64,000 bases of DNA from Stylophora pistillata (GCF_002571385.2 NW_019217867.1:465108-529107); one strand, 5' to 3'; positions 2,567 through 60,586 are shown, numbered from the stretch's first letter. Numbers and translations are program-made. Notes: generated by a model not told the origin, from the sequence alone.

Positions 2567-2599
2567 ATTTCAAGATGTAGCTCAGTTATTGCCACGAAG

Positions 2600-2855: not shown

Positions 2856-2948
2856 ATGGCGGCTGTGTGTAGGAGATCTCACTCGTTCTTTTACCATCTT
2901 TTGGGTTCTTTACCGTGAACGATCCTCACATTTTATCTGAGAAAAGGA

Positions 2949-4288: not shown

Positions 4289-4349
<61 letters not shown>

Positions 4350-4480
4350 TGTATATGAGCCAATATACCATAATCTAATACCTGTACATTGTAACATCCA
4401 GTTTCTTCTAACAAAATAAAGTCGAGAAGATTTGTCTAATGTCTTGGGGGTGTTTTTTTTTTTGTTTTTTTTTAATAAAA

Positions 4481-4517
<37 letters not shown>

Positions 4518-12077: not shown

Positions 12078-12229
12078 TTACACACTGGAGACTTGTTCGT
12101 CTTCGCAAGCGATCTTGTGCCGGTGCCAGTCCATCGCTTGGCAGTCTCGGCTACAGTAACCACGCCTGTGACACGCAGAGCAATGGAAATGAGCTGCAGC
12201 ACCACATGGACAAAACAGAAGCGCTGCTT
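12078..12229 (-). CDS. Terminal exon: MYND-type zinc finger, ending in ...VSSV-stop
   Basis: CPCGAAAHFHCSACHRRGYCSRDCQAMDWHRHKIAC matches the MYND C..C-x7-CxxC-x4-YCSxxCQxxDWxxHKxxC pattern (first pair spaced CxC). Acceptor ttcag at 12230-12234, phase 1. Confidence 0.9.
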
Positions 12230-15200
12230 CTGAAGATTGGAAAAGAAAAACAAATAAATTTAACCTTCTAATCAAAGATGGAAGCGAGAAACTTCGTTTC
12301 AATTCAAAATTCTCCAAAAAATGTTCAATTCAAAATGCTCCAAAAAATGTTCAATTCAAAATGCTCCAAAAAATGTTCAATTCAAAATGCTCCAAAAAAT
12401 GTTCAATTCAAAATGCTCACTGGCGCCTTTATTTTAACCTTACCTTGGGTGTTAGCAAATCTGATGATTACCGACAAGTTATACATGCTCTTGGTTGTTG
12501 CCTCGCTGGATGGTTCTACATCAGCCATCATGGCGTCTTGAAATAAGAAAACTCGTCCAAGAAGGGTTTCCAAGAATTCCTTCTTGAGTATTTCTCGAGT
12601 GTCAGCAAGGGTAGCATCGCTAGGAAACTCGACGAAGCCGATTTTCGTGAAGGGCTTTCTTCCTTCTCCTTCCGCGACTGTGTTGAGGACATTCACGGGA
12701 AGTCTGACAGTGTATGACTCCTCTGTCGTAAAAAAGGATTGACACAGTTTGAAAAAAGAACTATTACAAACATTGTACACGGGCTGAGTTGTTTGGTAGA
12801 AGTTAAAAAAAAATTCTCCGTAGACTGCGTGGAGCAATGTTTACCTTGCCCTTTAACTCGCAGAAGTGATGAAGTTGTAACTTCTGCCCATGATATCCAT
12901 ACATTATCCAGCAAACAGAAAATGAGAATCTGACTCAAACTTATCAGGTAGACGTTGTGTTATCTTGATCTCACACGAAATTCTCGTAACTACTTTACAA
13001 GGAAATGTGAAACAGCTACATGTAGAAGGGACAGTGAACAATCAGAGCTTGGGAATTGAACGGTTAACTGTCGAAAATAATTTTGGATCACATTGTCAAT
13101 CTATTGTTCTTGAGAATTTTTACACCCCGTGAGCCAACTAGAAGCGAAACGAAATGCAAAAGCAGTCGCTGAGTTGTCATATGCTTTTTCCTGCCCTTCA
13201 GACTGTTTGAATCATTGGTAATGAGTTTTCAAAGGAGTTGATATGCATAACCCTGATTATTGCTTCAGTTTTGGTATTCCAACACTCAAGCGAAAAGCGT
13301 CGTCGTCTGTTAACTCTTTGACCCTTAAAAGAGAGTGACTAACATCTACTTTCTCCTTTTAATATCACTCCTGAATCCAACATGAAAGTCATGGGAATTA
13401 AGGAAATGAACACTAACTTAAAGCTCCTGATTGTACAACAAATTCTCCTTGTCAGCACCTTATAAAATGTTTAGAGAACAGTATGGAGAATATGCATACT
13501 GATATATGGATATAAAGGGCGAAATTCTTACGCTTAGGCTAGAAACTAAGAAAATTTCAATTAAACTGAATAACCCACCTTCTACTGTGATGTCATTTCC
13601 GTCGTTACTGTTTCCCGCGTATCCAGGAGGAAGCAAAGTGACGTTCATTTTGGGTGTACTGTGACCGGAAGAGGGGCGGCTAGAATCACGAGATCTTGTT
13701 TGAGCTGCAAAGAATAAGACGGCTCTATAATATTGACGGCTCTATGTAATTGACGGCTCTGTGTTATTGACGGCTCTATGTTATTGACGGCTCTATGTTA
13801 TTGATGGCTTTGTGTTATTGACGGCTCTATGTTATTGACGGCTCTGTGTTATTGACGGCTCTATGTTATTGACGGCTCTGTGTTATTGACGTTATGTTAC
13901 TTTTGGACACCCATTTCAGCAGGCTACAACAACTTACGTGATTCTTGAGCCATCAGCCTCTTGTACAACACAGCTTTCTCAAAAATAAAATGCCTAGAGC
14001 TTTGGTCTTTTAAAGATTTCCTGGTGGGAGTACCCGAGTTAGCCGAAGATGGTGTCCCATTCCTTGTCAACTCTTCGTCTGACGAATCACTGCCAAAGGA
14101 CGAACCATTTTGAGCTTGCAGTCGTAACTTTTGCGGTGATAGTCCTCGTTTTGGTGTTTGCGGGCTTAAATTAATCGGTGATCCTTCAGTTGAGGAGTTC
14201 TCTTGCACCAAGATTTGGCTGTCACTTTTCTGTATCACCGTCTGTCTACCAAGAATCGATGAATCTCTGATGTTGGCGTCGATTGTTAGAGACGAGAGTG
14301 GAAGCCGTGGAGTGCGCCTAACAAGCGCGGGAGAAGTGTTCTCCGACCACGCTTCAAAAGACGCCTGGGACGAGGCAGAATTCACTTTGCGTACCTTCCG
14401 CTTAGAAAAGTTACCTGTTTTCGCTGAGGTGTTTCTTGAAGAGGGCCTCGACGATGGAGGTGTTTCATTGTCCGACGACTCGAAACAGTCATTGGTTAAT
14501 CCGCTGAACAGAATCATCTCGGTATCTCCCATCTTTTGAACCCTCTGCGAGGCTGAATTCGAATCGATCATGTTGATTTTCGATGCGCTTTTCCATGAAT
14601 GTTTGCCTTTTGCTCGTCGAACACGTTTCCTACAGAAGAAGAAGGCCACTCCAGTGATAACACCAAGAACGACGACCCCGCATACAGTGATTACTGCAGC
14701 TGTTGGAAATGTTGATCGGTCTTCCTCTGCATGCAACACCTTATCATTACCGTGATAATCTCGTCCGTCCACGCGCATGACCATTTGAGCTTGATACTCC
14801 GTGTTGTTCACACGCAAAATGTACCCCGACTTGATCATGTCCCATAATGCAACTAGGGTCTTGTCTATCTGGGATCTCTGGGCCGTAATGTCAAAATAAA
14901 CCAGGATGCTGCCTCGTGCGAGTGTCACATTATCAATCTTTGCACGTGAGAATCTTGAAGTTAGGTCTTTTATGATCGTTTTCACAAAGATGTCCTTGTT
15001 TCCTTCGACTTTTGAGAAATCGTTTTGGAAAACAAACATAACGTTTTTCATGACAGGTGGATCAAGACATGTTGATGATGACTCTGAAATGTTGACAGTT
15101 ATCTGAGGCGAGTGTCCACTGCTGACCACCAGGGCAGCGTTTGGCGCCAATTGAACCCTTATTGGCGCAGGGAACATTTGATAACGTGAAAACATAAACA

Positions 15201-18200
15201 GAGGTGTGACCACTGGTTCGGGCCACTGACCACCCTTCGTTACCTGAATCATGGACACGCCTAGGTCTTCCATTTCTACTTGAAACTGTTTAGCCACCAC
15301 TAAAAAGCTCTCGCCTCGATGTTCAGCCTTCACGATACCTCCAAACAACTCGTGCTCATGATTATAAGTGGCTACCAGTTCTCCTGCATTGAATGAGGTG
15401 CTTTCAAGCTGTGCATTCAAGATGTCAGATCCTCCAGCCAACTCGAAGTATAGTTGGGTGTCAGCATTTTTCTCTTTGGTTCCATCTCGAGTGCTCAACT
15501 CAGCTATTAATTCGAACTCGCAGTTTGTAGAGGCATTCTGGTGATCAGGGACGGTCATATGAAAGAGGTTTAAGAATCGCACCATATCCATATTTGCACG
15601 TGCTAACAGGTATGCATCGTTCCGTTCTAGAACTCCATTTAGATTGAAATCCATGACTTGTAGCTGTAAAGAGAAAGTAAAGGGTCCTAAGAGCGAAGAC
15701 CTTTATTAGCTCCCCTAGGGTTAGAGTAAACAGAAAGGAAAAGATATGGCGGGAGTCTTAAAATAGATTTTACGATTGAAGGTGTGGCAAGTGATGGTCT
15801 CTTCCGTCTCATGCCATATTTACGCATCGTTCCTTTCAGTTTGAAGACAGCTTGCCAGCTTGACACGAAATTATTCTTATATCGTGACATCCTGTCGGAC
15901 TTAAAAGTTCCTACAGCATTAAAACAAGATCTCAAGAACTATGACCCTCAGTTTTTTCTATGTACACCAGTGGGCAATAATAACTAAAGTCACAAACTAT
16001 CCAAAATCAAAAATGTAAGGATCAATTACATGGAATGAACGTATTTTCAATTCATGTGCTTACCATTTTAGTGGTTGTTCGCTTTAGCAACATTTGCCCA
16101 AATTCACTATTGAAGTTATTTTCTACTGCTAAGCTGTACGCCAAAGCGAAAGCAGGGTCTTTGATATCAAATACACAGTCTGCGTTGACATCTCCCAGCT
16201 GTGAGCTCTGGCATGGTGTCAGAGTAGGTGAAAAGTCACCTATGTAACCCAAGTTTTGATCCATTAACATGTTTACTGTTGCTTGAATGGTAGGTACACC
16301 GTTTACCAAGGAGTCGTAAACTAGATCAGCAACATGTGAAGTAGCATTATCAGGGTTTGTCAGATCTGCTATGTGTAACTGACCGTAAGTGTAAGAGTAT
16401 GCACGACTCCCCTTCAGGTCGACAAAATGGATTTGACTTTCGTCGAATGAAATCTTTACATCAAACGCAAGAAGTTTTGCCTTTCCTGGATTCACTCGGA
16501 CAGGGATGGTAATTTGCTGGTTAGCTTTTAAAGCTGGTATTGCGGGGCCGTACTTCTGCCCAATATCAACACCTCCCACTGGAGGGACTGTATTGCAATA
16601 AAACTGAGTTATATGTGGCTCAGCTAGACCCTGAAGCGGAGTCACTGTCACGGTTACCAAGTCATAATAATCTGACAACAACGTGACAACGCCAGTCGTG
16701 TTATCAACCAACGCTACATCTTCCTGGCTGCTTTTGAATGCAACAAGTCCCGGAAATGTAGAGAAATTCTGCACCCTAAACATGGAGCTGTCGTTCATGG
16801 CAAAGTCCACTTGTACCTGAGCTTGCGTGGCAAAAGCAGGACCAACAAGAGTTTGATTCCTAAGCCCAGTTATTTCTACAGCTACTATTTCATTGACAGT
16901 TATTACTTCAGTTGAAACTTCAAGCCTTAGCTGACTAGAAGCTCTCCCGGAGAACTTTCCAATAAGACTTATATTCCCACTGATGCTTATTCTCTCTACA
17001 AACAACACGTTCCTCGGGCTGGGACCCACCAAAACTTTAACACCCACGTCATTGCTTACGACACTGAAGGAGGCTGATATCATCTTGGTAACGTTATAGG
17101 TGGAGTTATCCGTTAAAATGAGGTTCAGAACAAGAGCAGCTGACTGGACGTTGCCATGACGATTACCTATGCGCTTTAGCGATTTCAAGGTTACGTTTGA
17201 TCTTTTTGTGGTTGGATAAGGTACAGCTGATAGTTGTAACGAAGAAAACCCAACTACGTTGATTTTTACACGAACATTGTATACGTTGTGAACACGGACA
17301 ATAAGAACGCCATGACCCAGTAATCCCTGGTGGTTTGCTTCAATCACTCTCTTGCCACTAGCCGAGACAACTGAGAACAGTCCACCTGATTCTGACTTGT
17401 CATCAAATGTCAATCTGCTGTCATCGTCAGATAGCTTTTCACGGTTACCTGTTGACAGGAAATACTCGTCAGCTATTTTGTAAACTTTTAATAAAAAAAT
17501 GATTGGTTACATTCACTCTTGTGCGTTTAGCTTGGCGCTTTAACATGAAGAAATATAATGCAGGGTTGTTTTTTTTTTTTTAAATGTTAAGTACATTCCC
17601 TCGGAATATTAAAACGATTTAAGCCGAATCAGTTCTGGGGAAATTTTTGGATAGCAATTAAATAGAGAATGTTGGTTAGTGAGTCAAGCCTTTTATCCTT
17701 GTAGATGGAAATTTTAGTTGAACAATTATGACAACTCGTATTGAAAGGTACACAGTTACAAGCAAAGTTTCTCCATCTGTGTTCTTTTTTCCGATTTAAT
17801 GTCGTCATATCTTACCGTTTTCAAACAGCAACAGCACTGATATCGGACTACTGATTGCAACGCCAACTGCAACAGCTGGGTCCCCTGGGGGACTTATCTT
17901 GTTGATCACATCTTCAATAAGCACATCCACACCTCCACTGTCATTCACATTGGTGAGTCGAACTGTCACCTTAGCAATCGTGGAGAGCCGCTGAGCTGAT
18001 GGAGCGTTGTCGCTTACACGTACAACAAGGGTGTACCTCACGACTGTCTCATAGTCCAGATCCTTGTTGACGATAATCACACCAGTTTTGGAATTGATAT
18101 CAAAATTGTTGTCTTTATTACCAGCTACAATCGAATAACTGAGTTGCCCGTCCATTCCGAAGTCTTTGTCCGTGCCATTTATGTCCCCAACAATGGAACC

Positions 18201-21200
18201 AACAGCAGTATCCTCAGGGAGTTTTACGTAGATACTTGCGGAATGTTGTAACTGTGGTGCAAACTCGTTCACGCTCACTATTTCCAAGCTAACAAGCACC
18301 TCGTTGGTTTGTGGCACCTTACCTTTGTCCAATGCCTTGACTGTAAGGGTGTAAAGAAGATCGGCCACGTGTTGCTGTGCCTCCAGATCAAGGCTTTTTC
18401 TTACTTTTATTATTCCAGTGTTAGAGTCGATTTCAAAGAAGCCAGGAGTGTTACCTGACTTGATTTTGTACACAACTTGGCCATTTGAACCTGATGCAGA
18501 GTCAAAATATTTAGTAAATATATACAATGATTTGTTTATTTTGCCGACAGATTTTAACCCTTCAACTATTTCTTAGAGAGATCAACTCCTTATGATTGTG
18601 TTGACTGCTAAAGAGTAAGATTGTAATATTCTCCTTGCCGAGAAAAAAAACAGGTCCGGAAGTGGCACGTCAACTGATTTTCACAACAGAGGAACAGTAC
18701 GTCGGAAATGCTTATTTATTTTCACAGAATGGTACTTTGCTATGACCTGGTTGCCTTAAGTAGGGAAGACATTTTATTTGAAATCTTCTGACTGAATTTC
18801 ACTTCTCCCATAGTAGTTCAATTTATGAAGTGAGAAAAACTCAGCTGACCCACGCTTTAAGGCTAGCTTAACTTGAAAATTATTCATATACCTGCGTCAG
18901 TATCACTTGCTTGCACTGTGATGACGTCACTGCCCACTTTCACAGTTTCCTTGACAGCGACGTAGTATGAACCTTTGCTGAAAACTGGTCTATTGTCATT
19001 GATATCCCTTAGACTTACATTCACAATCATGACAGACGAACGTTGATCGGCTATCTGAACAGGCCAATCAGAAGCCTTTATTTCCAGTTGGTACTTTGAT
19101 GTTGTCTCTCGATCCAAAGGAGCGTGAATGAATATTTTCCCAGAAGACTCGATCCGAAAACGCCTGTCCTCATTTCCATTTATTATCTGATATCTAATTT
19201 GCAAATATAAAATATTATTCAACAAACGTTTATACGGTGGGGTCCAGTGATCTCCCTACTTCTAAAGACCACTAATTATAAAAAGATCAAGGTATACCGC
19301 TAGGCTCCGAAACATGCGCGGTAAATCGTACTAATATCACACTGACTGAGCCCAGAATGTTTTTAGATCAAGTTTTTCAGGCCAAAGTTGATTCAGTGTT
19401 ATTCCCTTGAAGAATACTTTCAAATTCAACCCAACAAACTCAGGTTTTTTTGTTGTCCATTTACTAAAATCAAACCAGACAAATGGTAGTTCGAATGGAG
19501 GTCATCTGAAAATGACCGTCAGCCAAATTGCTACCACGTAGTATAATTCAAGGATTCAAAAATTACTCTTAACAGGAAAGAAAGATTTAATTATGTCTAC
19601 ATAAATTAAAGTGAGTTCTCAAACAACCTTGCTCCTTTCAATACAATGACAAAACTTACGTTATGAGTCCATCAAGCCCAAAGTCCTTGTCCGTGGCTGT
19701 CACTTGGCATAACAGCGTTCCAACAGCAGTATCTTCTGGAATCTGCAATGAACGGCCAGGGTGAGTGAACTCTGGAGTGAATTCATTAACCTCTTTGACT
19801 TTCAACACGTATGTAGCATTGTTAGACAACTGCGGATTCCCATAATCCTTCGCCTCGACCAAAAGTGTGAAGTTGGGGTAAGGTGCTTGAGCAGACTCCA
19901 GATCGAGGCTCTTTTGTAAAGTCAGGTCTCCAGTGTAAGCGTTTAGACTGAAATAGCCGTCCGAGTTCCCAGATGTGATGACGTAACTCACACGCCCATT
20001 TTCACCTGAGTCGAGATCGGTAGCCAGGAAACTTGTAGCCTTTTCACCTGAAATATGATGCACGGAACGATAGATAAACGGTTTGGAACCAGTGAAAGAG
20101 AAGTGTTAAAAGAGTTGTTTAACGTTTTATGCGGATATAGACAGATGTTAATTTGTGGTCACGAGAGACATGAAACATATCTGAGACCTTGTAAAAGAGA
20201 CATTTACAAATTCACCATACTTTACGTAAGCTAGAGCCTGTTGCTTCGAAAGTCCTGTTCTGTTTTCATTCAAGATCGCGATTTCAAAAGTTTTGAAAAT
20301 GAGATAATAAAACTATCAGCTAAAGAAAAAAAAAGGACTGGTTTGGGTGCCAGAACCTGCTTTCCTATCTTTTAAATTTTGAATTTAAAACATGGCCTCG
20401 GGCGTGTTAAGTTACCGAGACTTTCGAGTAACGGGCCTCTGATCACTAAACTACGAAAAAACTTGAGGAAGATCGACTAGACAATGTATCCATATTTTTA
20501 ACACCCTCAAATGCTGTTTCGACCGGCAGCAATTCGGAAAAAAATGCGAGAGAAAGGAAAAGGAAAAAAGTTACATATCTTTTCCGTGTCCTTTGCCTCA
20601 CCTGAGGAAAGCGTCTCGGGCACCTGAATCAATGTGTAATTGTTTGAAAACAGTGGATGATTATCATTAACATCCTCGACATGGACCTGTAGGTCGAAGT
20701 CAGTGTAACGCGCACCACCAGTGGGGTCACTGTCTGATGCGCGAATGATCAGCCTGTAAAGAGGTGATGTCTCGTAATCCAGAGATGAAGTCAACGTAAC
20801 AACACCAGAAGACCGATCAATTGCAAACTTTCCGTCGCTGTTACCACTGTAGATGAAATAATGAACCATTCCTGCGGAGTGATGAGAACAACCAAGCATA
20901 AATGAAAAATATCGTTCAAATCATTGCGAATAATCCAAGTAAAGTTCTCAGTAACCTTACAAAGTATGACAATGATTTTAAACGTCTTCTGCACAGATGG
21001 TTCAAGGTTCTGACAAAGTAGAAGTAGATCTCAATTAAAAGCCACATTGTCGCCGTTTATTTTTTTATTTTTCGAAGAATTAAAATGGGTCTCTACCTTT
21101 CAGGCTAAAAAAATCTTGACGGACCCATACAGGCTTCCCTTTGAAGCCTTGTGATTGCAACAATTTAATAAAAAATGAACCATTCAGAGTTTCGCTATGG

Positions 21201-24200
21201 CGAGAAATCTTTCAGCGATTTATTTTCCTCTTTTTTTCCAACGTCATAAGTGGCTTTTTACGGTCTGTGCCACAAGGAAAGCGAAGAAATTCCTAATAAA
21301 GGAATAAACAATACTGTTAAAAGCCCCAGTCAAAACAAACCCAGTCCCTTGATACTTCGTTATTACCAGTACTGTTTCTGTACTACCAGTCAGTAAAATG
21401 TTTTTATGTAGACCTTTCCATTTTACCTTGCACTCCGAAATCCTTATCGGTAGCATTCACGTCAAACAACACCAGTCCATTTCCAGGATCGTAATTTTCC
21501 TTTAAGGTAATAGAAGCTGATTGCTCGTGAGTCAGCTGAGGCGAAAACTCATTTGCAGGTGCTATGTTGATTACCACAACGGTGGAGTTACTCAGTGTAG
21601 GTGATCCCAAGTCAGTCACATGCACAGCTTAAAAGTATCAGAACAGAATTGTTTTCTCAGTAAATGAAGAATGAGTACTTCTTGCCTAAACTTTCCTATG
21701 GCACGTCCTAATTCAGATATGTTGCTAATTCAAATTGACTATGTACTAAAAAGCGCTTTTTTTCACATTTGCTCGTGTTTTTCCAAGAAAACTACAAAAC
21801 TACAAATTAAACGCTTTTTTTTACATTTGCTTATGTTTTTCCAAGCTGGTTCAGGGATGATGCAGCTGCTCTAATGAACAGTTTTTCATCACGAAAGCGA
21901 ATAAAGATATTGCTTTACCTAAGCTGTAATTCAGGGATGGTGGAGCTGATCCCTCTAAATCGAGCGATCGTTTAACAAGAATGTCTCCTGTGTCAGCTTT
22001 GATGTCAAAATAACCGTCAACGTTTCCTGATGTGATAGAAAACGTCAACTTGGCATTTGCTCCTGCGTCACGGTCCATTGCGTCCACACCAAGTACGACG
22101 TCATTTAAGTTTGCGGTTTCGTTTACTCGAGATGCATATCCATTTTTGGTAAACCACGGGGCGTTATCATTAAGGTCACCAATATGAACTACAACAAGGT
22201 TTAAGGAGTAACGAACTTTCTCCTCAACAGCTCCGTCGTAAGCCTTCACATTCAGGTTATAAACTGCATTTTTTTCGCGGTCTAATTTACGCGCAGTAGT
22301 AATAACACCAGAGGTCCTGTTAATATGGAAGCTGTTGTCGATGTTTCCCGCATGGAGGGTATAGTAGACATCACCCTGACTTCCAATGTCATTGTCTGTG
22401 GCATGGATAGCCATGACATAGGAGCCAATGACTGTTCCCTCATCAATATGAACTGTGCGGTTCCCTGGAGTGAACACTGGAGAATAGTCATTGACGTAAT
22501 GGACCTAAGAGAGAGGAAATAGATAGAAGTTGTATGATGAGACAGGTTCGCAGAAAGCTGAGAGGGTTAAGAGAAGGTAAACAGTTTGGTGGCTCGATGG
22601 ATAGGTAGGAAGGTAAGTAGGGAAGAAGGTAGTTTGGGATAGTGGGAATATATTTGATAACTAAAGGTAACTAGATACCATTGCGAACTTTAGGGAAGTG
22701 GTTTGTTTAGTATGTAAGTAAAGGGGCTGTTTTACACACAGGTATAATGAACTTGAGAGAATACCGAGGGCAGAACAACGCCTTCAATCACGATTCATTG
22801 ATAACCTAATTAAACTGGCTCACCTCAAAAGCGGCTGATAGGACAACATGTCCATAGCTCGATTCAAACTTCAATACATAACCAAGGCCGTACAAAGTTA
22901 CGAGGAGATCATTAAACACAGCTCGCTCCTCAACTACTGAAATATTAAATGTCCCATTCAAAAAAGACCCTCCAGGCTGGGGGTTGGCATATAATGACAC
23001 AGTAATCCACCATGGGGTCTTCAAAGGTGCAGCCTTTCTACCTGTCCCCAAATCTCGAACTTCCACCACTGGCTGAGTACCAAATGGTACAGATTGATTT
23101 GCACGAGCTACTTGTGAGACGATCTCCAGATAAAACTCCCTTGGTTTTACGTCAAATGAATCAGACATGGCCAACATTCCGGAGTATGCTTGTGAGTAAG
23201 GACTGACCGACACGTTGAATTTCATTCGATAATCGGTAGCCGCATCGTAAAAACTAAAGTTTGAAAACTCTATGCGCCCTGAAACTGGTATTTGGAATTT
23301 CCTTTGGCCGAGTAGCACCTGGTTTCCAGCTCCTTCTTCCATTGAAGCTAGAATCGTCCACTTTCGACGGCGCCAACCCAGATTTCCAACCAACATGTTA
23401 GTGGCAGTGTCTCGGATCTCGAGCACAGGTTGGTGGCCGCATGGGACGGTATCATTGCAGTCTCCTGAAAAAAAGACAATACAAGTAGGTTTTTAGCTTA
23501 TAGAGATTACATTTTGAATAGTTTACTTCCGAGAGTAAGTCATTTGACCATTCTCCATTAGACGGCCGCAAAACTGCAAAGATTCTTCAAAGTTGAAACT
23601 TTGTCTATTTCAGTGACACCATAGCGTAAATGCGTAAATGTAAACTTGGAAAACGTATAAAAATTTGCGTTTCATACTTTGAAAGGACGAGCCTTTCAAC
23701 CGTACTAGAAATGAATCACTAAAAGATCCTACTCTTACCTGGCTGCTGAGTAATAACCAGGTCTAAGACCCTTTCTTTCACGTTAAAAGGAGTGGTGTTA
23801 GTTGAGAACTGGTAACGTGATGATGGAACTGTGAAAGCTTTGATTATAAGAATGTAGTTATTGTCCTTATGGTCGATAGCGAGATCACGAAATGACGCAA
23901 CACCGCCAGAAAACTCTACACTGGACGATCCATTCAGGTTTCCTGGAGGTGGAATTAAACAAAATCGACAAATATTAGTCGATCGAATTGAAAACATAAG
24001 TCTCGTTCTTGCATTTAGCATTCATTCTCCTTTGATCATGATATCATTTACAGTCTAGATTAAGAAACTGTGTCTATGCCTCTTTAAGAAATGAGAATGG
24101 AAAACTATACTTATTTAACACAGGATATTTGATTTCTAAAAGATCAGTTAAATCGAGAGCAGACAACACCTTGCATGATATGGGCAGAAGGTATTGGGCA

Positions 24201-51200: not shown

Positions 51201-52455
51201 AATAAAAAGAAATGGGGTTAACAGAAGCATTGCCCCAAACGGAGATTTTTTTCTGTTTTTTTTTTTTTTTTTTTACAGTGGAGAGGGGAGTCAAAGACTT
51301 CATTTCTTTCAGGGGCTACTCCTATAGAACTGAAAGATCAACAAAGCGAGGACTTAATGCTTACGGGTTAATACTGACATTTTCTACATAGCAACACTTT
51401 TCGACCGAATTAACTGGTACATAGTTAAAAAAGGGTTATGATACCGATTAGTAGCAGCATCATAAAGTTTTTCACTTCCGGCAACGCAGAGAGAAACTGT
51501 TTTGCATGTACATGTTGCTTTCGAATGATTTTAATGAATTTCTTGAAAAATGTTGATTGTTTTCATTATTGAGAAAAGTAATTACAATTTGTTCAGTCAT
51601 TATCCCTAAGTATAGTAGCTTACAGTGAAGACCATCCTGTAAATTCAGAATTAATACAAAAAAAATTCTACTCGTTCCCTCAGTTTTCGATCGATGACAT
51701 GCATCCTGACTATCTATTTTGGAGAACATTTTAGACCTTTATATGTCATTAATGTAATAACCCGCCGCTCCAGCTATTCATAAAATTACAGCAAAAGCAA
51801 CTATCATCGTAGATCAATAAAATGCATGTATTTTACGTGCATCTTCCACTTTGACTCTGACTCCGTCTTACTTTGTCTAATTACATGGATGACCCATGTA
51901 ATTAGACAAAGTAAGATGGACAGAACTGTGTTTCATTCATTCCTAAATTGAGTTTTTATCTCCTGTAAATAATTGCAGCAGCATACATTTACCTGTTTAT
52001 ATAGTTTTATAAACAATTATGGCCACACAGGTAGGGAAAAGAAATTGGAAGAAAAATTCGCCTTTACAAGTTTTGATGCTCGCCAAATAGGGGAATCCTT
52101 GTTTACAATATTTGCCTCATTAGCATAAGCAATTCAGTTTCTGATGGAGTTCAGTTCTAGATCTGAATATCGAAAGGTCAAACTACGATTAACTCGGCCA
52201 ACGAATACGAGCCTGATGCATTGAGTACTTTTTGTGCAACACGGGTTTAAAAACTCAAAATTTTACATAGAATGTATGAACTCATTAGCGCTTTTGCCAC
52301 CCAGAAATTTTGCAGTTTTTGATGGACTATTTCTCGTTGAATATTACACTCAAAGAGCTAAAAATTTCACCATGTACTAAGGTTTTCTAGCTCCTTAGCT
52401 GCCTAAAGTCAATTTGTATCTAACATGCTTCCTTCTTTACGCAAAGCCGTATGCA

Positions 52456-52487
<32 letters not shown>

Positions 52488-52827
52488 TGAATCCGCCTAT
52501 ACTGTGCTAAGGAAAACTGCTCGAATCTAGAGGAATTATGAAATGATTCTACAATTAAAGTTTGTTTCTCATTTCTCAAGCTCATTTAATTTAGCAAGGA
52601 ACTTTTTATTTTTTTAATAGGAGGATTGCTGTGGTCTTCACTCCTTTTGCGATGAGATACTTGCTACTTGCCACTATATTACTATATTAATGATATTTTG
52701 AGAACATATCCTTAATATTTTTACATATTCTCTATTTAATCTTATATTATACTCGTGTTATTCATTTATAGTGTCCACAATTAGCTTTTAGCTAAATACC
52801 TTGACACTTCAATAAAGTTTATGTATG

Positions 52828-52861
<34 letters not shown>

Positions 52862-55800
52862 TGTATGTATGTATGTATGTATGTATATACGTATGTATGT
52901 ATGTATGTGAGCTGCAAACAGTGTTTTTCGTGGACAGTTTTGGTTGGTACGTCACGGAAATGACTCATTAAAAAAAGCTCTGCATTTTCAGTAGCTCTCC
53001 AACACAGCACTACTGTTTCTATTAAGAGGAGCAGAAGAGATTTCAAGAAGCTCATAGACAAAAGTCTGGCAACACTGGTAACTCAGTCACAGTGAAAATT
53101 GAAATTTCATCAAAAATCTCTTTGCTTAAAATAGTTATGAAAGGGAAGTACGCAAATTGTAATGGAACAAATTAATTTAATTTTATACGGTAAAAAAAAA
53201 CTGAGTTTTGACTACGAAGCTTGATTGGCACGCAGTTTTAAACAAATTTTTCACAATAAAATTGGAGTCTAAAGACAATGTTGATATTTTCTCTTTTTTT
53301 TAGGTAGTATGTCGACAACGATTCGTATCTATGCGTTCCTGGCAGTTTTAGCCGTTTCCTTTGGACAATCGACGTCTTGCAATTCTGAATTGCCATCGGA
53401 TAGGGACTGGGCTAATGATTGGCACTTGCCAATGAATTTCAGGTGAGGAATTGGTGACTAGAAACTTTTGCTTCCTATTTTAGCCATTTTACGTCTGTGT
53501 TTGTTGGCAGAGTTTCCTCAAGTATGTGGATGTGAGGCTGAAGCCTCTTTTTATTTAACTTGTTTAATTTCAAACTGAACAATTTAAAGTTAATTCCTGA
53601 TATTACTTCACATATTTGTAGGCAACGCAATCACGTCGCTGTACAGTTACTGGTTGGGCTGTAAGAATGATCGCGTCTGGACCCTTAAATGTGGTGCTGT
53701 TGGCAAATTCAACAACGAGAAATGTGTTCGCTGACCGCAGATAATTGTTTGGGAATTTTTTTTACAAAGTACAACGCCAGTGGTTACCACTGGCCATAAA
53801 GCTTCCCGCTGATTCACGCGGCAAGCTAAACATAATTTTTATTTCTATGAATTTCAGGGACTGTGCTTGGCAGGCCCGCGTCTGCCATGTTCGAAAGATG
53901 GCGGCGATGAGCATTTTAATTGACAATGAAGTAACCTGACACGACGTCATGATTTATGAGACATTGGTGCTGGGATCCGGCAAAGCTGGATAATGTGACA
54001 AGTTTTCTCGAAACAGAGAAATAAAAGTGATGTAAATCAACCAATCTCTCGTCCTCTTCCCTTTCTTTAGAATAGTGATTCGCTCGATAATCATGGTTAT
54101 CCAATATAAAAAATACTCTGTTAATTTCGAACTTCGACTATCTTTATCGTAGTCTAGTGAAATACCCACTTAGGGTTGTTCAATGCGGTTGGCTTTCATT
54201 CATTAAACGAGCACATCTTCAGTTATCCTTTAAACGTGAAAAATCCTAGATCTTTGTTGTTTACTGTATATAAACCCAGTCAACGTTAACCAGGATTAAA
54301 TATCCAAGGTTGCACGCTCCTGAATGAACTTAAGGTCTCTCAGATATTGCATAGCAAGAAGTCAAGTTGAGTCAAGTCACGCCGCGAATGAGCTGTCGGC
54401 TTTGATAGACCATAGTTAGTCTAACTATGCATAGACAGAGATTATTGCATGGCTGCGAGAACACGTGAATTTTATGTTCGAGGTCAAGAACAATATATTT
54501 GTGCCACGAGGATATAAACTACATATCTTTGAGTTAACGTGTAATTTTCTTTTTATCTTATAGACAATAAATATAAATAGAAAAGCTGGCTTTCGTACAA
54601 ATACATACCCAGTGCCAAAATTATGTAAAGGTTTACATATGGCACCTTCAGTTAGTCCAAAATACACGAGAACTGGTTTGAATCATTAGATACTTTTATT
54701 TTCATCTTCTTTTCACTACGAACCTTTGAAGGCTGTTCAGCACCGTCAAACAAAACAAAACTTTAGCTTTATCTCGTCGCAACTACCGAGAAATCCATAG
54801 GAGATGCGTTTTGTTTTTGGTGTTCTTGTTCTTTTAAGCTGGTTGTTCGGAAAAAGCTGTCACTTCTTCGTCGCTTACCACAACAGATCTTGCGGCGAAA
54901 ATAAATATTCCAAAGAACAAATAAACTAAATTCATTCTGCAAAGTTTGAAAACACAGGAACGGTGACATCGGTGCTCAATATCGCCATTCTTGTTACAAG
55001 CAAAAAAGACACCACTTGGTTCCCGGGTGTAGTGGTCGGAATTCTACGAGTGTTTTTGTGCACGATAAAGCACTCAGATCCATATGATAGAAGCAAATAT
55101 ATCTACGCACAGGGCGTTTTACACAAATTCGCGGCAAACAAATATGACTTTTATCAGAAAACATTTCGTCGCTGGCTTGCAGGCAATTAATTTGGAGACT
55201 AAGTTAATTTTTTTTACTTATTCTTTCACACAGATGTTGTTTTGCCTCGAAATTAGAATATGAGAAATTTGATAGGAACCGATTGGTTTTTAAAGGTATT
55301 TTCCTTCCTACGTGTTTTGCGTGACCAACACAACCATCTCCACGTATTGTGCAGAGTTTAACATATAATCAATGGCGGATCCAGGGGGAGGGTCCAGGGG
55401 GTTCGGACCCCTCCTATCAGACCTGACGCTTACAACTTTGAGACTGAAATTCTTACATCAACAGGATCATATATCACTGTTTAACTGGCTGATTTTTTTA
55501 ATTAATGAATCCAAGTAAACGGTAAGCGGCCAAGGAATTATAACATGCAACCACGACTAGGGACTGGTGGGAGGGGGTGTGGGGGAGAAGTAATTTGCCT
55601 CAAAAGAGTCCAACAGTCCTTTCTGAACCAAAGTTTCAGGACCCCCCCAATCAAATATTCCTGGATCCGCCCCTGATAATTATCATTGTATTTGGAATGA
55701 AGAAACGAAAGAAAAATGCACAAATAGTTTTGCTCTTACCGAGCGCGGACTCATTATCAGCAGAAGTGATCGCGTAATTTTTTTTGTTTTGTTTTGTTTT

Positions 55801-58800
55801 TTGTTTAATTTTATATCCACGATAAATATGCCAACATAAAAGCTCTCGATGGACTTCCATTCCAAAACATTTTTTAACCATCAACCATCAAATGTCCTTT
55901 TCTCTAACCACCTAAACGGTCTAAACCGCCAACAGTAGTCAAATAAGCTGTTCCATTAAGATACCCCGTTGCTGCCGAAGTAGCGCGGGCAAGAGATGCC
56001 ATGTTTAGTGTGAGAAAACTGGCTGTGAGCCACAACAACGGGTTTCACTGACTGGCTAGAGATCTTGTGGTATTGGGAACCCGTCGCGCTTGTAGATGAC
56101 TGGTACAGTAAGTGGCTACCAAGATAAACCCAACGGGATACAAACTTACTCTATAAATAAACTGAAATGTGGTTCAAAAGCATGATGTGTCATTGAAACA
56201 TATTTAATATTTTGTTCGTGTTCAATCCCTCGCACGATTGCAGTCACAAATTTAAGTCGCACTTTTTCGTTAAATAACCTCTTATTTAGGTCAAATATGC
56301 GACTTTCTTTTCATCCGACATCTAGCTGTGGAAGCGAATCTTTTCTCACTCAGGAATGTCAAGCTTTCGGTTGAAGCTGTCAACTGATATGCTTTAACAG
56401 AGATGTCAAATCTGGAGGTAATTTGAAATGCCAAATCCTTAATGCTTATGCCCATGATACCAAATTAACAGCTTAAAGGTTCAATATATGACATGGTGTT
56501 ATTTTCTCTGTGATGAAAATGCGAAAATCAACTTAACTCTATTACACAGGCGACTTCCCTTTGTGCCTAAATTCTCGAACCCTTGCAAGGTTATAAGAAT
56601 GAGAGCTATATTTGAAAAGTTTTTTTTTTCTTTTTACCAATTTCCCCTGTTTCTTGGCTTGCTTAAAGTTATAGATCGTCAAGTGTCATATCTATAGTGA
56701 CAAATCAGGGATTATGCCTGAGTGCACATCATACTCCCACGTACTCAGACCTGAAATTAACTAGACGCGACGCGGATAATCTCACAGAGCACTTACCAGG
56801 TAGTCCATATTTCGGTGTTATTGAAGTAATTGTTGGTGTCTTCGTTTCAGTGTACTGAAAGAATAAAGTGTTTAACGATTGGTTAACCAAAGGTATCATT
56901 CGTTCATAGGGGCAATTGGAATTTCCAGAGAAAGTCAAAGTGTCACATGAGAAAATGCCTTTCTACTTTATTTAAGAATAATTACCTTATATCTAAAAGT
57001 AACTAACATCTTGTCTACTTCATTTTGAAATATGTCTAAAGCGTAACGTGCAGGCCAAGTTAAAGTTACAACAGTAATACCTACAGGAATATTTATTACC
57101 TTAAATAAACATTCTCCTCGGCAATACACATTTACACCTGTGTTATGCAGCCACTTCCCATCCACTAACACTCGTATGTTATAGCTATCTTCTCCTGACG
57201 GGGAGGGTCTTAAAGTGAGACAAAGTATAAAAGACATATCACTGAGAGAAACGAAAGTTTGTTCTGCTTTGAAAAGTACTGGAATCCGTTGAAATGTTTC
57301 CAAAACTCTTGATCATGAAAAGGACAAAAAAACTGAGAATTTGTGGAGTTTACTGGAAGGTATCGGGCTCGACTTCGCCGATGCAAAGTGTGCTGCAAGC
57401 GTTGTTGAAAGGGAAAGTTTAAAATTGCCAATCTACAATCATCGACAAAATGATGATAATAAAGATAGCTGACTTGTGGTCCTCATCTTCATTTAGGACG
57501 ACACCAACTATTTGTCTGTTTTTTTGTTTGTTTAAATGTTTGTTTTAATTGGTTTTTAGAGCAGAAGGGCCAAAGGTTCATTTGCCTTGATCTAAAAGTT
57601 GCGAAATAGTTCATTAAAGACCAAGGGTGAAGCAATGAAAATTATGTACTGACCTCGTTTGACAAACTATTCGATACGGGGTCGTGTAGTACGAGATAAC
57701 GTCACAAGGTACAACATGGGCGCGAGAGACTGATACAAGGGTGACGTTATTGCCCAACTCTTTCTCAAACTCGTTGAACTGATTCTGTGCAAATCCTGAA
57801 ATGATTAAGATAGGTATCTAAGAAAGGAAGAAAAGATCTACGGTAGTTAAACCTTGCTCAATATCAGAAATCCTGAACTTCTGCGGACAATTTTCCCTAA
57901 ATTCATACGGCTTTAGGTAGTTGCAATTTGTAGTGCACGGGGTATAAGAATTCGTTTGATTATAGATGCTAGCTTGTCTTTCAAGACCAGCCTCTGCGGC
58001 AGTTCGAGTCTAAAACTTGAGCTTTTACAGTAGGGAATTATGAGAGCTTTGTTTTTTGGGAGGTTTTACTGTACTACTGTTAAGTGGTTAATAAAATTAC
58101 TTTAATTAGCGGTAGCGAAAACTTCACAAAAACTTGGCCCATCTTAACATTCCAGGAACTTACATGTGCGAGATGAAAGTTTCATCGAAAGGCAGTACGT
58201 GTATATGCTATGCGACTTAGGAAATGTCACATATTTCATCTCATTAGAATCGTTGTAGATGCAAATATCAAAAACTAGGTTACAAAAATTCACAAGGGAC
58301 AAAAACGTTACAAGGTAATTATACAATAATATTTCTGCAGCCAAAAGTGTCACACGTTGATTTCTTTATTGGATCACAAGCAGCCCTAGCTCACTACCCT
58401 GTAGCGGACCAGGGGAGCTAACTGTTTTTTTTGTCGACTACAGGCCGCTGGCTACCCTCGCCGGGCTTATTTTTGTTAACCAACATACTGTGCGATCGGC
58501 GAACGGGCCCACAAATGTTTCAACTAGCCAAATTCGAAATTGGAAAGCCGATCGATCTGGAGATAAAAGTATCGCTAGTGAAAGATCTGTGGGAGGAATT
58601 GTGAATCGAGTGAATGGAAAATGGAACTGCAACATCTCTGCTTTGATTTTCTGGAGGAATCGAGACTGGTGGTAATTTTTTGGCGGAATTATTCGCTTCG
58701 GGCGACGGACGCTTCTAAAATAGGTTTCCGGCCTTGTCTTTCTTTTAGCAGTTGAACACCAACATAGCGCTAACTCGCCGAAAACGCTTCAAAATGGCCT

Positions 58801-60586
58801 GAGACGCTAGGAATCAACAAAGAAAACAACAAGGCAATAAGGTAAGCCCATTTTATTTCAAAACAAGACATTTTTTTCTCTCTTTTAAGGCAAACCGATA
58901 ACATCCCATACAAACCTTTATAAATATAAAACGTTGCGCAACACGGTAAGAGTCACGTCCGCTTTTCTAGTTGTGAGCTTGGGCTGCCTGTGATTGGATC
59001 GATTGAACCGAACCAACTCACTTCAGTTGAAGCGAAGCAACAAAATGGCTAGACTCGTAGCTTACATCAGCATACCATCAGATAACGCAAAACTGGGTGG
59101 CGGTAAGAATCAATATTTCCTCTAAGCTATGTAACCAGGGGGGCTGATTTCCCCTTCCACTTCTTTTCTATCGCACAGATTTGGATCCATGCCTTGATAC
59201 ATGACCCCCTCTCAACCGATTGATTATGTTCACAAGCGTGGAACACGGCTAGCGGGGGTGTTTTCAAAACGGTAGGGTTATTTTTATCCAAAGAACGTGA
59301 CCCTTCTTAGACAAGTAAGCCCAACATTTTGTCGGTCCTTTTTTTTAGCAAACTTCTTCAACACGTTGTTGGCTTTGCGGGAAGTAACTCGTGCCCGCTT
59401 TTTATCGGACTTAAGCGCAATTAGGAAAAAACTTAATATGCAAAATTGGCTGCATTAGCGATTTCTCCTTATAATTTGGCATGAATTTTAGAGAACTTTT
59501 GTGTCCAGTTCACTTTCTTGTTGTTCCGGCGACTATTAAAGACTCTGAAAAATTCCCGCTTGGCCTACACCTGGCTTACTCGCATAATTTAATATTGTAA
59601 CATCGGTATAGAACTTGAAATGCACAGGTGACTTAATTGGTCTCCAATAGTGAAATTCGAACACCTTCAATAACAGCTTGTCTCACCATGATGCCGCCTA
59701 AGGCCCCAAAAAGAACCCTGCTTTGATTTTGCGAGTTTCTCTAAAGTAGTGACTTCTAAAACTTGCGAACTTTTTGTGCACGAGTTAACTAATCGATGGC
59801 TTACAAAGCATCTAAAAATTTCTGTGTTCGTGAGAGGTAGTTATCTTAAAATCTCAACAAACAAAACAATTAGTTGTAAGGTCACCTATCTGTCTCATGT
59901 CCCTGACATTTAAAGTAGTTATTTTTCAATCGTTCATAGTTAGTAAGAAGTCTGAACAAAGATTTTCAAGCTGATTGTCAAAGAAGTTTTTTTCCGCGAT
60001 TACTTAGCCTTTGGTTGGATATCGCTTCGGTTAAAGAAGGTGTAGTGTGTTGTGTCTGGGTTCTGCACAGATGTCCATGAAACCGGTCAAACAGATAATG
60101 CAAACCAAGCTAGAATTTCTATTGTTATCCCTCCTTAGATCAAAGTGATAATGCGGTCGAAATATATATATCCCAGTCAAAACTGCCGAGGTTTTGATGA
60201 GAGAGGTTGGGTTTTGACTGATTGAAATTTTGCTCACTGATTAACAGCAAAGTTATTTTCTTATTGTGACATAGCAGTAATAAGCCAAATAACTACTGCA
60301 AAATCATCGGCTAACAATAGCAAATTTCAGAATAGCATACCTTCTCCATGTATCGTTAATCTTGTTGCTCCAAGCAAACTTCCAGTTGTTGGGGTAATTT
60401 GAGTTACACGGCCACCTGAAAATAAAACACAAATAAACTCCACATTACTCATTTCCTTGCAGCCAAATCATGTGAGAGGCAAAGACCGGACTTTGTCGAG
60501 AAACTGTTCTTTATACCTTGAGCTACAAATAGAGAGAAGAAAAGAACTGCCACAGACTGAAAAATTTCCTTTTTTCGGTTCTTCAT
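12078..60586 (-). CDS. Giant single-pass membrane protein (~59 exons, ~6,500 aa): fibrocystin-L (PKHD1L1)-like ectodomain fused to a cadherin / cohesin / dockerin (coherin-like) module with a cytoplasmic MYND finger
   Basis: There is a continuous series of minus-strand exons with GT-AG boundaries. I checked phases by hand for the first 15 exons and for most junctions from 22824 to the stop at 12078; middle-exon boundaries are approximate. There is one signal peptide at the start, one TM near the end, and no stop, second signal peptide or second TM in between. Confidence 0.85.
12301..12417. repeat. Minisatellite, 26-bp unit AATTCAAAATGCTCCAAAAAATGTTC, about 4.5 copies
   Basis: Direct tandem copies in the last intron of the giant gene. 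Confidence 0.95.
12935..13520. mobile_element. Two degenerate TTAA-CCC-type MITE remnants (approximately 12935-13067 and 13310-13520)
   Basis: Termini ..GAACGGTTAA and TTAACTCTTTGACCCT....TATAAAGGG, with internal similarity (AAATTCTC..AAATGT..AACAG) to each other and to 4183-4706. Confidence 0.5.
13717..13896. repeat. Minisatellite, 17-bp unit TTATTGACGGCTCT(A/G)TG, about 10 copies
   Basis: Direct tandem copies filling most of intron 13705-13937. Confidence 0.95.
14636..15060 (-). CDS. Juxtamembrane SEA-like domain (G/SILV motif at 14899-14913) and single transmembrane helix (14636-14700)
   Basis: FVFQNDFSKVEGNKDIFVKTIIKDL..IDNVTLARGSILVYFDI, then the TM AAVITVCGVVVLGVITGVAFFF followed by the CRKRVRRAKGK stop-transfer segment. 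Confidence 0.8.
15585..16195 (-). CDS. Dockerin-like domain (duplicated Ca2+-binding loop-helix), split by the phase-0 intron 15664-16063
   Basis: Loop 1 is G-DVNADCVFDIKD-PAFALAY (16157-16195) and loop 2 is M-DFNLNGVLERND-AYLLAR (15616-15651). Both have D/N/E at loop positions 1, 3, 5, 9 and 12 followed by a hydrophobic helix. Confidence 0.78.
16240..16540 (-). CDS. Cohesin-like domain (cellulosome type)
   Basis: ALKANQQITIPVRVNPGKAKLLAFDVKISFDESQIHFVDLKG..HVADLVYD resembles the cohesin consensus (G-x-x-V-T-V-P-V..I-x-x-x-D-F-x-I-x-Y/F-D..L-x-V..A-x-I-x-F). It sits directly before a dockerin-like motif. Confidence 0.72.
16590..17935 (-). CDS. About three bacterial-Ig-like (BIG-type, TMEM132-like) beta-sandwich domains
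   Basis: Beta-rich repeats such as AQVQVDFAMNDSS..LVAFKSSQEDVALVDNTTGVVTLL..VTVTV match the BIG2-type x-S-S-x-x-x-V-A-x-V-D-x-x-G-x-V-T pattern. The domain count is my estimate. Confidence 0.55.
17935..22504 (-). CDS. Seven extracellular cadherin (EC) repeats
   Basis: Repeated xE, A-x-D-x-D-x-G, LD(R/Y/L)E, A/V-x-D and xN(D/E)xxP Ca2+-binding motifs occur across exons 21919-22504, 21427-21627, 20601-20871, 19659-20047, 18892-19192 and 17816-18490 (boundaries approximate). Confidence 0.95.
20233..20440. mobile_element. Degenerate MITE with GGCCCGTT..TCGAAAGTC-type TIRs
   Basis: Left AGAGCCTGTTGCTTCGAAAGTC and right GACTTTCGAGTAACGGGCCTCT form an imperfect inverted repeat. Confidence 0.45.
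22824..25913 (-). CDS. Four tandem ~110-aa Ig-like 'QP' repeats
   Basis: Each repeat starts N-E/D/Q-T/S-V-P-F/C-x-x-Q-P-x-L/V and contains W-x-x-x-x-S, G..A/E/V-x-F-x-N/D-L/F, Y-x-L/M and F-x-V. Exons are approximately 25687-25913, 24652-25040, 23759-23943 and 22824-23464. Confidence 0.8.
24333..24623. mobile_element. Double-hairpin interspersed element, copy 1
   Basis: Inverted repeat TAGTATAATTTCAGAGCTGA...TCAGCTCTGAAATTATACTA (24333-24517) abuts a second palindrome AACAATTATTCGCCTCAGGTTCGGTGAATATTGTCGAATA...TATTCGACAATATTCACCGAACCTGAGGCGAATAATTGTT (24519-24623). Confidence 0.85.
26081..27184 (-). CDS. Fibrocystin-type C-terminal region with a SEA-like domain containing a polybasic (furin-type) site
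   Basis: NLIQNLASLLNIDESRIRVVEIVNAAGKNRRRRRASDDEVMTVTIEIG; RRRRR lies at 26497-26511. Confidence 0.8.
27790..37690 (-). CDS. Two G8 domains, each followed by parallel beta-helix (PbH1) regions
   Basis: G8-1 is WSSPYTWG..PEKGDGVVIPKGQTMLLDVDTP..GKLQVGTENTPF..GTKVLAVREGTLDLHG, followed by RAEVGLLTRN, GRYPIHFH and HAFFIEDGIETGN..PATFWVTNPNN. G8-2 is MVADTEIP..LFIYGTLE..GNLIIGWEDQP..GSKAI, followed by AEVGLLTRNIVIKG and INPSDCIDMDCDG. These are fibrocystin-family hallmarks. Confidence 0.92.
29861..30152. mobile_element. Double-hairpin interspersed element, copy 2
   Basis: Highly similar to 24333-24623 over its full length, same orientation, in a different intron. Confidence 0.85.
37690..42807 (-). 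CDS. IPT/TIG domains 4-14 with an intervening cupredoxin-like insert
   Basis: Eleven repeats of the pattern P-x-I-x-S-I/V-x-P-x-x-G..GG..L-T-I-x-G-x-G-F..V-x-I-G..C..I-x-C-x-T occur in ORFs 41716-42807, 40271-40864, 39113-39910, 38251-38949 and 37269-37799. The insert is YAWNPQTIAINAGDSIKWQW..FKLPGTYFYSSG. Confidence 0.9.
43119..48343 (-). CDS. PA14 domain and following linker region of the giant gene
   Basis: RLRGFFIPPSDNNYTFYIQADDLAELYLS and LRKGQYYYLETVHVQGGG..VGV are PA14 signatures. They are followed by TGSAVNEKQQI and CGRFSLKNP, as in PKHD1L1/PKHD1. Confidence 0.85.
44881..45310. mobile_element. Hairpin-bearing interspersed repeat
   Basis: Inverted repeat GGGCCGGACGGGAAATTATTTGGCTC...GAGCCAAATATTTCCGTCCGGCCC (about 44898-44999), with additional GGCCGGA motifs to 45310. 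GC-rich island in an intron. Confidence 0.65.
45873..45912. repeat. Short tandem repeat, 10-bp unit TAGCATATAT x4
   Basis: Directly visible. Confidence 0.85.
48513..57795 (-). CDS. Exons 3-11 of the giant gene: IPT/TIG domains 1-3 (57654-57795, 57100-57208, 56797-56854, 50876-50963, 50399-50452, 50196-50269, 49861-49971, 49641-49751, 48513-48605)
   Basis: The exons translate to GFAQNQFNEFEKELGNNVTLVS..PCDV..IVCQTR, EDSYNIRVLVDG, TPTITSITPKYGLPG, LLEIRGRMFTD, YGRS..KLYLFQSHA and VSPAVGSTAGGTVLTIKGKGFD. These are collinear with the PKHD1L1 N-terminus and phase-compatible. Confidence 0.88.
48757..49300 (-). mobile_element. tRNA-derived SINE (body mostly in the N gap)
   Basis: The reverse complement of 49232-49300 reads ACCGCCTCCCGGT-TAGCTCAATGG-ATAGAGCGCTGGACTGTTGTGCGGGAGGTCGAG-GGTTCGAGCC, i.e. 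Pol III A and B boxes without a canonical anticodon arm. An A-rich repeated tail (CTAAATTAAA) follows the gap. Confidence 0.65.
51862..51920. other. Near-perfect 59-nt hairpin (27-bp stem, 5-nt loop)
   Basis: TCCG-TCTTACTTTGTCTAATTACATGG-ATGAC-CCATGTAATTAGACAAAGTAAGA-TGGA; 23 perfect pairs plus 3 more beyond a G:T. Confidence 0.9.
52088..52500. mobile_element. MITE-like element with imperfect long TIRs
   Basis: The left end ATAGGGGAATCCTTGTTTACAATATTTGCCTCATTAGCATA resembles the reverse complement of the right end, ATAGGCGGATTC..TTGTTTACATTTTTGCTCATTTGCATA. Confidence 0.5.
52820..52908. repeat. (TATG)n microsatellite
   Basis: Directly visible, with two interruptions. Confidence 0.97.
53309..53734 (+). 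pseudogene. Nested antisense dermatopontin / hemagglutinin-amebocyte aggregation factor-like secreted protein, truncated (exons 53309-53442, 53511-53521, 53622-53734; degenerate remnant to ~53900)
   Basis: The spliced product is MSTTIRIYAFLAVLAVSFGQSTSCNSELPSDRDWANDWHLPMNFRVSSSNAITSLYSYWLGCKNDRVWTLKCGAVGKFNNEKCVR*. It has a signal peptide plus one W-x-N-D-W..N-F..I-x-S-x-x-S..D-R-x-W-x-x-x-C repeat. The TGA falls where a Trp is expected, and a further acceptor at 53857 leads to RDCAWQARVCH. Confidence 0.65.
55370..55675. mobile_element. MITE with CAxxGGCGGATCCAG terminal inverted repeats (hAT-like termini)
   Basis: CAATGGCGGATCCAGG ... CCTGGATCCGCCCCTG. Both flanks carry ATAAT, but there is no clean 8-bp TSD, so it may be two half-elements. 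Confidence 0.55.
60341..60586 (-). CDS. Exons 1-2 of the giant gene: signal peptide and start of IPT/TIG-1
   Basis: 60586-60517 encodes MKNRKKEIFQSVAVLFFSLFVAQ(G), a basic n-region plus hydrophobic core. It splices in phase 1 to 60415-60341 GRVTQITPTTGSLLGATRLTIHGE(G), which resembles the PKHD1L1 start (GSINGATRLTIRGEG). Neither exon is in the ORF track. Confidence 0.85.

Follow-up and report, generated by a model that had tools for sequence, protein, structure and literature searches.

A giant coral gene that joins a fibrocystin-L-type ectodomain to cadherin repeats

Fibrocystin, mutated in recessive polycystic kidney disease, and fibrocystin-L, mutated in deafness DFNB124, are huge ectodomain proteins whose molecular mechanism is poorly understood. 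A locus of the coral Stylophora pistillata (GCF_002571385.2 NW_019217867.1:465108-529107, a stretch of 64,000 nucleotides hereafter called the window) raised the question of whether a whole ectodomain of this type can be part of a cadherin. An initial annotation, made from the sequence alone, proposed that a fibrocystin-L ectodomain is fused in frame to a coherin-type cadherin with a MYND-finger tail, yielding a single receptor of ~6,500 aa. We examined whether the fusion is real, which domains it contains, and whether it is conserved.

A fusion splice supported by RNA

The sequence at the junction is as the initial annotation described. On the minus strand, ..LSAAFE is followed by gtgagc at 22824, and an acceptor ..ctcttag precedes VHYVNDYSPVF at 22504, in phase 0. 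Read-through of the donor would stop after five codons, ending VSQFN*. To find out if the join is used, two sets of polyA RNA contigs (runs X1 and X13) and two sets of raw RNA reads, from four studies, were aligned to 17400-23399. The main observations were as follows:

(i). Seven joints were found, all with GT..AG ends on the minus strand. All seven appear in contigs of X13, and six in X1, where the 20871/21427 joint is missing.

(ii). The fusion joint is carried by a 1,897-nt contig in X1, a 1,171-nt contig in X13 and two raw reads of a third run, X24. In contrast, depth in the intron bin 22600-22799 is 0 in all four runs.

(iii). No cluster of molecule starts or ends was detected in 17400-23399. 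Polyadenylation after 22824 together with a lack of junction-spanning reads, the outcome that would have contradicted the initial annotation, was not observed.

(iv). A 4,956-nt contig of X1 continues 3,356 nt beyond 17812 towards the 3' end, which is the length expected if the next exons are spliced as modelled.

A gene model was then built with a simple chain procedure based on codon log-odds, splice weights and frame bookkeeping, which recovered the RNA-proven junctions within 17816-22504 without being given them. The first version placed wrong tiny exons at both ends, chose a wrong frame at 32421-32286 and missed exon 27948-27790. Runs with a strong homology bonus over-extended exons and broke RNA-proven junctions, and were discarded; a low-stringency comparison of the 5' region with the type-2 homologue gave mostly noise. 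The final model is a manual merge in which the two ends were corrected by eye and four places were patched with homologue evidence. It has 59 exons, all GT-AG, a CDS of 19,917 nt and 6,638 aa, somewhat larger than initially estimated. Orthologous loci from other assemblies match it exon by exon, with match borders that fall on our exon borders. Support is nevertheless uneven: no single read or contig shows the whole 20-kb mRNA, so that the chain rests on overlapping contigs, and neither the 5' end nor the last splice to the MYND exon has RNA evidence. Three small exons (45684-45621, 31880-31830 and 13704-13579) have weak or no support, and the second is probably wrong, because an intron-less homologue shows no extra residues there.

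The window contains an assembly gap that lies in intron 49640-48606. The exons on either side encode the two halves of one TIG domain and join in phase 1. In the scaffold of a close relative, which has no N, the two gap flanks abut. The gap therefore sits inside a ~550-nt intronic insertion that this relative lacks, and no coding sequence is expected in it.

Domains of the encoded protein

Domains were sought with Pfam and by structure prediction on single exons, while the joined model was used for local BLAST against homologous loci and for a hydropathy scan. Pfam detected TIG in 12 stretches; when two N-terminal TIGs seen by motif and homology are added, the count is about 14, in agreement with the initial annotation. 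PA14, two G8 domains each followed by a CEMIP-type beta-helix, seven cadherin repeats with readable Ca2+-binding linker motifs (xNDxxPxF, LDxE, DxD), and zf-MYND (31.7 bits against a cut-off of 22.7) were also found.

The two large 3' exons and the last fibrocystin-like exon gave no Pfam family at E<=0.01. As a consequence, the cohesin, dockerin-like and SEA-like domains are not named by Pfam in the window's own exons, and the assignments in the two large 3' exons rest on predicted structure. Foldseek with the whole 460-aa model of exon 17448-16064 returned only generic Ig-array matches, and a domain-wise VIA search was needed to identify three Big_2-like Ig domains and a cohesin fold. The following exon, 15663-13938, is predicted to contain a beta-sandwich, a SEA-like domain, a transmembrane (TM) helix and a disordered tail. 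The SEA matches are only 1.5-2 Z units above the ferredoxin-like background. The dockerin-like pair is the weakest item, supported only below threshold. Indirect evidence comes from sequence relatives of the module, which carry Pfam Cadherin, Ig_TMEM132_4th-6th, Cohesin and Dockerin_1, and from a language-model look-up that also lands among Big_2/Dockerin/Cohesin proteins. 'Coherin-type' is thus a reasonable description. Hydropathy finds one TM-grade segment only, at aa ~6197, and none near the junction at aa 4609. Altogether, the initially proposed architecture is confirmed, with the reservation made for the dockerin.

Table 1. Features of the gene model in the window. C215, contig of the same genome that carries a paralogue; L001, L005 and L022, orthologous loci of other assemblies; L023, scaffold of a close relative; orthoA, locus L009+L008+L002, orthologue of the C215 paralogue.
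Positions	Strand	Feature	Evidence
12078..60586	-	Whole gene model, ATG at 60586, stop at 12080-12078	Chain model patched with homologue evidence
60517..60586	-	Exon 1: start codon and signal-peptide-like N-terminus (basic start, then a hydrophobic run)	Reading of the sequence; donor CAAG|GTATAA, phase fits exon 2; no RNA or homologue support
49641..60415	-	N-terminal TIG1-TIG3 in small exons: 60415-60341, 57795-57654, 57208-57100, 56854-56797, 50963-50876, 50452-50399, 50269-50196, 49971-49861, 49751-49641	Exon-sized matches at 50-78% identity in L022; Pfam TIG in 49591-49791
48862..49232	.	Assembly gap (N), intronic	Left flank aligns to L023 9279-9523 and right flank to 9520-9672; the paralogue-type (type-2) locus has the same two half-TIG exons with nothing between them
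47397..48605	-	Second half of TIG3 (48605-48513) and PA14 (48343-48102, 47648-47397)	Pfam PA14 E 9e-7 at 48093-48356; homologues in L022, L023 and orthoA
37278..47306	-	Unnamed domains (47306-43119), then main TIG array (42807-38280, continuing into 37855)	Pfam TIG, 4+1+3+2+1 stretches; in-frame homology to orthoA, C215 and L022
34457..37855	-	First G8 and first parallel beta-helix	Pfam G8 E 5e-38 at 37272-37892; CEMIP_beta-hel E 6e-34 at 35311-35877
29103..32509	-	Second G8 and second beta-helix	Pfam G8 E 2.4e-17 at 31991-32239; CEMIP_beta-hel E 4.8e-7 at 30205-30420; colinear with a single 1,110-aa open frame of the homologue
22824..28788	-	C-terminal part of the fibrocystin-L-like ectodomain, with internally repeated ~110-aa units	No Pfam name; conserved exon by exon in L005 at 70-94%
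22505..22823	-	Fusion intron, 319 nt, GT..AG, phase 0	Spliced out in RNA
17448..22824	-	Seven spliced joints: 22504/22824, 21627/21919, 20871/21427, 20047/20602, 19193/19660, 18490/18892, 17448/17816	RNA contigs
17816..22504	-	Seven cadherin repeats in six exons: 22504-21919, 21627-21427, 20871-20602, 20047-19660, 19193-18892, 18490-17816	Pfam Cadherin, 7 stretches in 17808-22504, E 1e-13 to 4e-35; all exon borders seen in RNA
16586..17448	-	Three predicted Big_2 / TMEM132-type Ig-like domains	AF2 model, pLDDT 88.9; LigA (Z 9.9), Sap and intimin Ig domains at Z 8-9.9
16232..16582	-	Predicted cohesin-fold domain	VIA-align Z 10-11, rmsd 2.4-2.8 over 110 residues; nine of the first ten matches are cohesin modules
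15570..16231	-	Dockerin-like pair of Ca-loop/helix repeats, split by intron 16063-15664, borders approximate	Repeat motifs in alignment, helices in both models; four PDB dockerins at E 0.13-0.9, not significant
14743..15066	-	Predicted SEA-like juxtamembrane domain	MUC16 SEA5 Z 9.7; other SEA or SEA-like domains 7.5-9.1, among them TROP-2 9.1 and TMPRSS6 SEA 8.1
14614..14700	-	Single TM helix followed by a basic stop-transfer run	Hydropathy peak; AF2 helix at residues 322-350 of the exon; aligned with TM segments of homologues
12444..14613	-	Cytoplasmic tail: disordered Ser-rich stretch, exon 13704-13579, conserved 92-aa globular exon 12722-12444	pLDDT below 50 (disordered stretch); 28 homologues of the 92-aa exon at 55-93% identity with conserved exon ends
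12078..12229	-	Last exon: MYND zinc finger and stop codon	Pfam zf-MYND E 1.6e-7 at 12081-12329; donor 12444 and acceptor 12229 phase-compatible; 74% identical in L001

Conservation of the fused arrangement

The last fibrocystin-like exon has 37 exon-sized homologues at 35-82% identity. In three loci from other assemblies (L002, L004 and L005) it is preceded by G8/beta-helix exons and followed directly by cadherin exons. The coral's own genome holds a paralogue on contig C215 that is colinear with our model from aa ~1000 to ~6200 at about 35-50% identity, and a MYND exon lies downstream of it. OrthoA is the orthologue of that paralogue, at 55-85% identity, while L004 represents a third, more distant lineage. 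The 16064/15663 join is also colinear in a homologue that has no intron there.

The most telling detail is found at the junction. In type 1 (the window and L005) the intron follows ..AFE, whereas in types 2 and 3 the donor lies seven codons earlier and the equivalent residues (..PFE or ..TFD) are encoded after the acceptor. Nevertheless, the peptide across the join is colinear and the phase is 0 in all of them. Hence, selection has acted on the joined reading frame, and the fusion predates the duplication.

A scan of the 398-Mb assembly for G8 found four matches only, two in this gene and two in the C215 paralogue. This number is a lower bound, and no unfused fibrocystin-type locus was seen. 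When the Ig/cohesin exon was searched against 1.84 billion representative proteins, 339 relatives were obtained but no full-length fused protein, the closest being exon-sized fragments. A search with the conserved 92-aa tail exon was equally unable to document the last splice, as all 28 hits are genomic exon frames. No description of a fibrocystin-cadherin fusion was found in full-text literature searches, which did not extend to the paper that defines coherins (Nichols 2012).

Possible function and comparison with known proteins

The explanation that best accounts for these observations, and in which we place high confidence, is that the locus is one transcribed gene for a giant type-I membrane protein of about 6,600 aa, with a signal-peptide-like start, a ~6,170-aa ectodomain, one TM helix and a ~415-aa tail. 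Its function can only be inferred from domain content. PA14, G8 and parallel beta-helix domains are typical of carbohydrate-binding or carbohydrate-processing surface proteins, and a head of this type might contact a glycan-rich surface, matrix or neighbouring membrane, held far from the cell on a Ca2+-stiffened cadherin/Ig stalk. Cohesin-dockerin pairs and SEA domains are force-bearing modules, and SEA domains are often self-cleaving; they would provide clasping or self-association, the pairing itself being a hypothesis, and a possible cleavage or shedding point next to the membrane. MYND fingers bind proline-rich PxLxP motifs, and the finger would recruit such partners inside the cell. Our best reading is therefore that the protein would act as an adhesion or mechanosensory receptor, possibly on cilia or microvilli, as vertebrate PKHD1L1 does on stereocilia. 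For coral biology, the gene is a candidate for cell-surface sensing or adhesion.

Other explanations were considered. That two neighbouring genes, a secreted fibrocystin-L-like protein and a separate coherin-type cadherin, merely appear fused because of read-through, chimeric RNA contigs or mis-assembly seems very unlikely. Short-read contigs can be chimeric, none spans the whole gene, and read-through past 22824 would stop after five codons; however, the joint falls exactly on GT..AG in phase 0, it is seen in runs of three studies including raw reads, and the same adjacency and a colinear junction peptide occur in independent assemblies and in a paralogue with a shifted intron. In addition, the cadherin half begins inside a cadherin linker with no ATG or signal peptide, and the upstream half has no TM. 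A different possibility, compatible with the view we favor though less likely than not, is that the fused gene gives several products, such as a cadherin-only receptor, a secreted fibrocystin-only form or an ectodomain shed by SEA-type cleavage. In X1 the contig over 17.8-20.8 kb has a word depth of 47.6 against 11.1 for the contig over the junction, about 4 times deeper, which may reflect 3' bias or an extra, shorter cadherin-only isoform. The SEA-like domain keeps a G-S-(I/V) motif at the position of the known cleavage site, and secreted forms of vertebrate PKHD1L1 have been mentioned. In X13, however, depths are even (12.1, 9.6 and 9.2), as 3' bias in X1 would predict, and no cluster of molecule starts or ends was found in 17400-23399.

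One cannot discard either that the protein is mainly a structural surface-coat or matrix-anchoring protein, with a MYND tail used only for sorting or cytoskeletal anchoring, although we find this doubtful. Vertebrate PKHD1L1 is a protein of the transient stereocilia coat, the relatives of the stalk module are adhesion-type cadherins, and most of the tail is disordered. Yet the 92-aa tail domain is strongly conserved across many assemblies and the MYND finger is kept in the paralogue, which argues for a specific intracellular partner. An unlikely speculation is that the fusion is a 'Rosetta stone': in anthozoans, fibrocystin-family genes were found only as fibrocystin-cadherin-cohesin-MYND receptors, as the only G8 matches found in this genome are in the two fused paralogues. 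The fibrocystin-L ectodomain would then work as the distal ligand-binding or coat-forming head of a cadherin-type, force-bearing link with its own intracellular signalling output, and vertebrate PKHD1L1 or PKHD1 would act with separate cadherin partners such as tip-link-type cadherins, having lost, or never gained, a stalk and tail that are still joined to the head in corals.

What appears to be new is the conserved combination of known families, an architecture that can be added to the early-metazoan cadherin repertoire alongside coherins, lefftyrins and hedglings. The head resembles vertebrate fibrocystin-L (PKHD1L1) and fibrocystin (PKHD1) in its signal-peptide-like start, three N-terminal IPT/TIG domains followed by PA14, long TIG array, and two G8 domains each followed by a parallel beta-helix. 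At 4,609 aa, the fibrocystin-like part is comparable with the 4,243 aa of human PKHD1L1. However, vertebrate PKHD1L1 ends in a 20-aa TM and an 8-residue tail, while here that place is joined in frame to about 2,000 more residues.

The stalk shares with coherin-type premetazoan and early-metazoan cadherins and with the TMEM132 module (Nichols 2012; Sanchez-Pulido and Ponting 2018, PMC6030884) cadherin repeats followed by TMEM132-type Ig domains and a predicted cohesin domain. None of the 150 best relatives of the module has any fibrocystin-like part, and many of them repeat the module 5-7 times, whereas this protein has it once. The Ig domains come before the cohesin, while in TMEM132 the cohesin comes first. 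As in the giant adhesion cadherins CDH23, PCDH15 and FAT, Ca2+-linker repeats form an extended stalk on a single-pass membrane protein, and CDH23 and PCDH15 are the best solved-structure matches of the last repeat, which is a resemblance only. There are, however, only 7 repeats, the distal end is a 4,600-aa fibrocystin-type head instead of a cadherin tip, and the tail has a MYND finger and no catenin- or PDZ-binding motif that we tested. Lastly, a SEA-like alpha/beta domain directly before the TM helix is shared with SEA-domain surface proteins (MUC16, TROP-2/EpCAM and the TMPRSS family), to which the rest of the protein is unrelated.

Sequences nested in the introns of the giant gene

A dermatopontin-like sequence was detected in antisense orientation inside the 5.8-kb intron of the giant gene. 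This sequence is 59% identical over 141 aa to an ORF that carries Pfam DERM in L023, a scaffold of a close relative, and the same nesting is seen in L023. No long open frame is listed there in the window, however, so it may be interrupted or spliced.

The intron that holds the assembly gap carries a ~550-nt insertion relative to L023. The letters next to the gap translate like a SINE or tRNA-derived repeat, which probably explains why the assembly broke there. In another intron, a short element is far more abundant in RNA runs than the flanking exons (word depth 150-730 against 10-48), and its reads run off into unrelated sequence on both sides. It looks like a dispersed, transcribed repeat.

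Features in and around the fused gene and at related loci
Feature	Location	Strand	Context
Dermatopontin-like sequence	window 53309-53722	+	inside intron 56796-50964
Intron with the assembly gap	window 48606-49640
RNA-abundant short element	window ~20250-20400		inside intron 20601-20048
Tandem repeats	window 13705-13937 and 12230-12443		two introns of the tail region
92-aa cytoplasmic exon	window 12444-12722	-	before the MYND finger
Paralogue of the whole fused gene	contig C215 of the same assembly (G000), ~347600-384600	minus	loci L016-L021
MYND exon of the paralogue	C215:347603-347752
Third lineage	L004 (ENA ERZ25067548 ctg105588), 2531-18177

The cytoplasmic tail region

Two introns of the tail region are filled with tandem repeats, which show up as the same short peptides repeated 3-5 times in all reading frames. 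The 92-aa exon is the best-conserved part of the tail, with 28 homologues at 55-93% identity, and has no Pfam name.

Related loci

A second, intron-poor paralogue of the whole fused gene, including a MYND exon, lies in the same genome. Together with the window's gene, it holds the only G8 matches found in the assembly. A third, more distant lineage (35% identity at the junction exon) is represented by locus L004, and shows the same order of G8, then junction exon, then cadherins. This locus comes from the same sample as L003, a type-2 copy, so that organism has at least two such genes as well.
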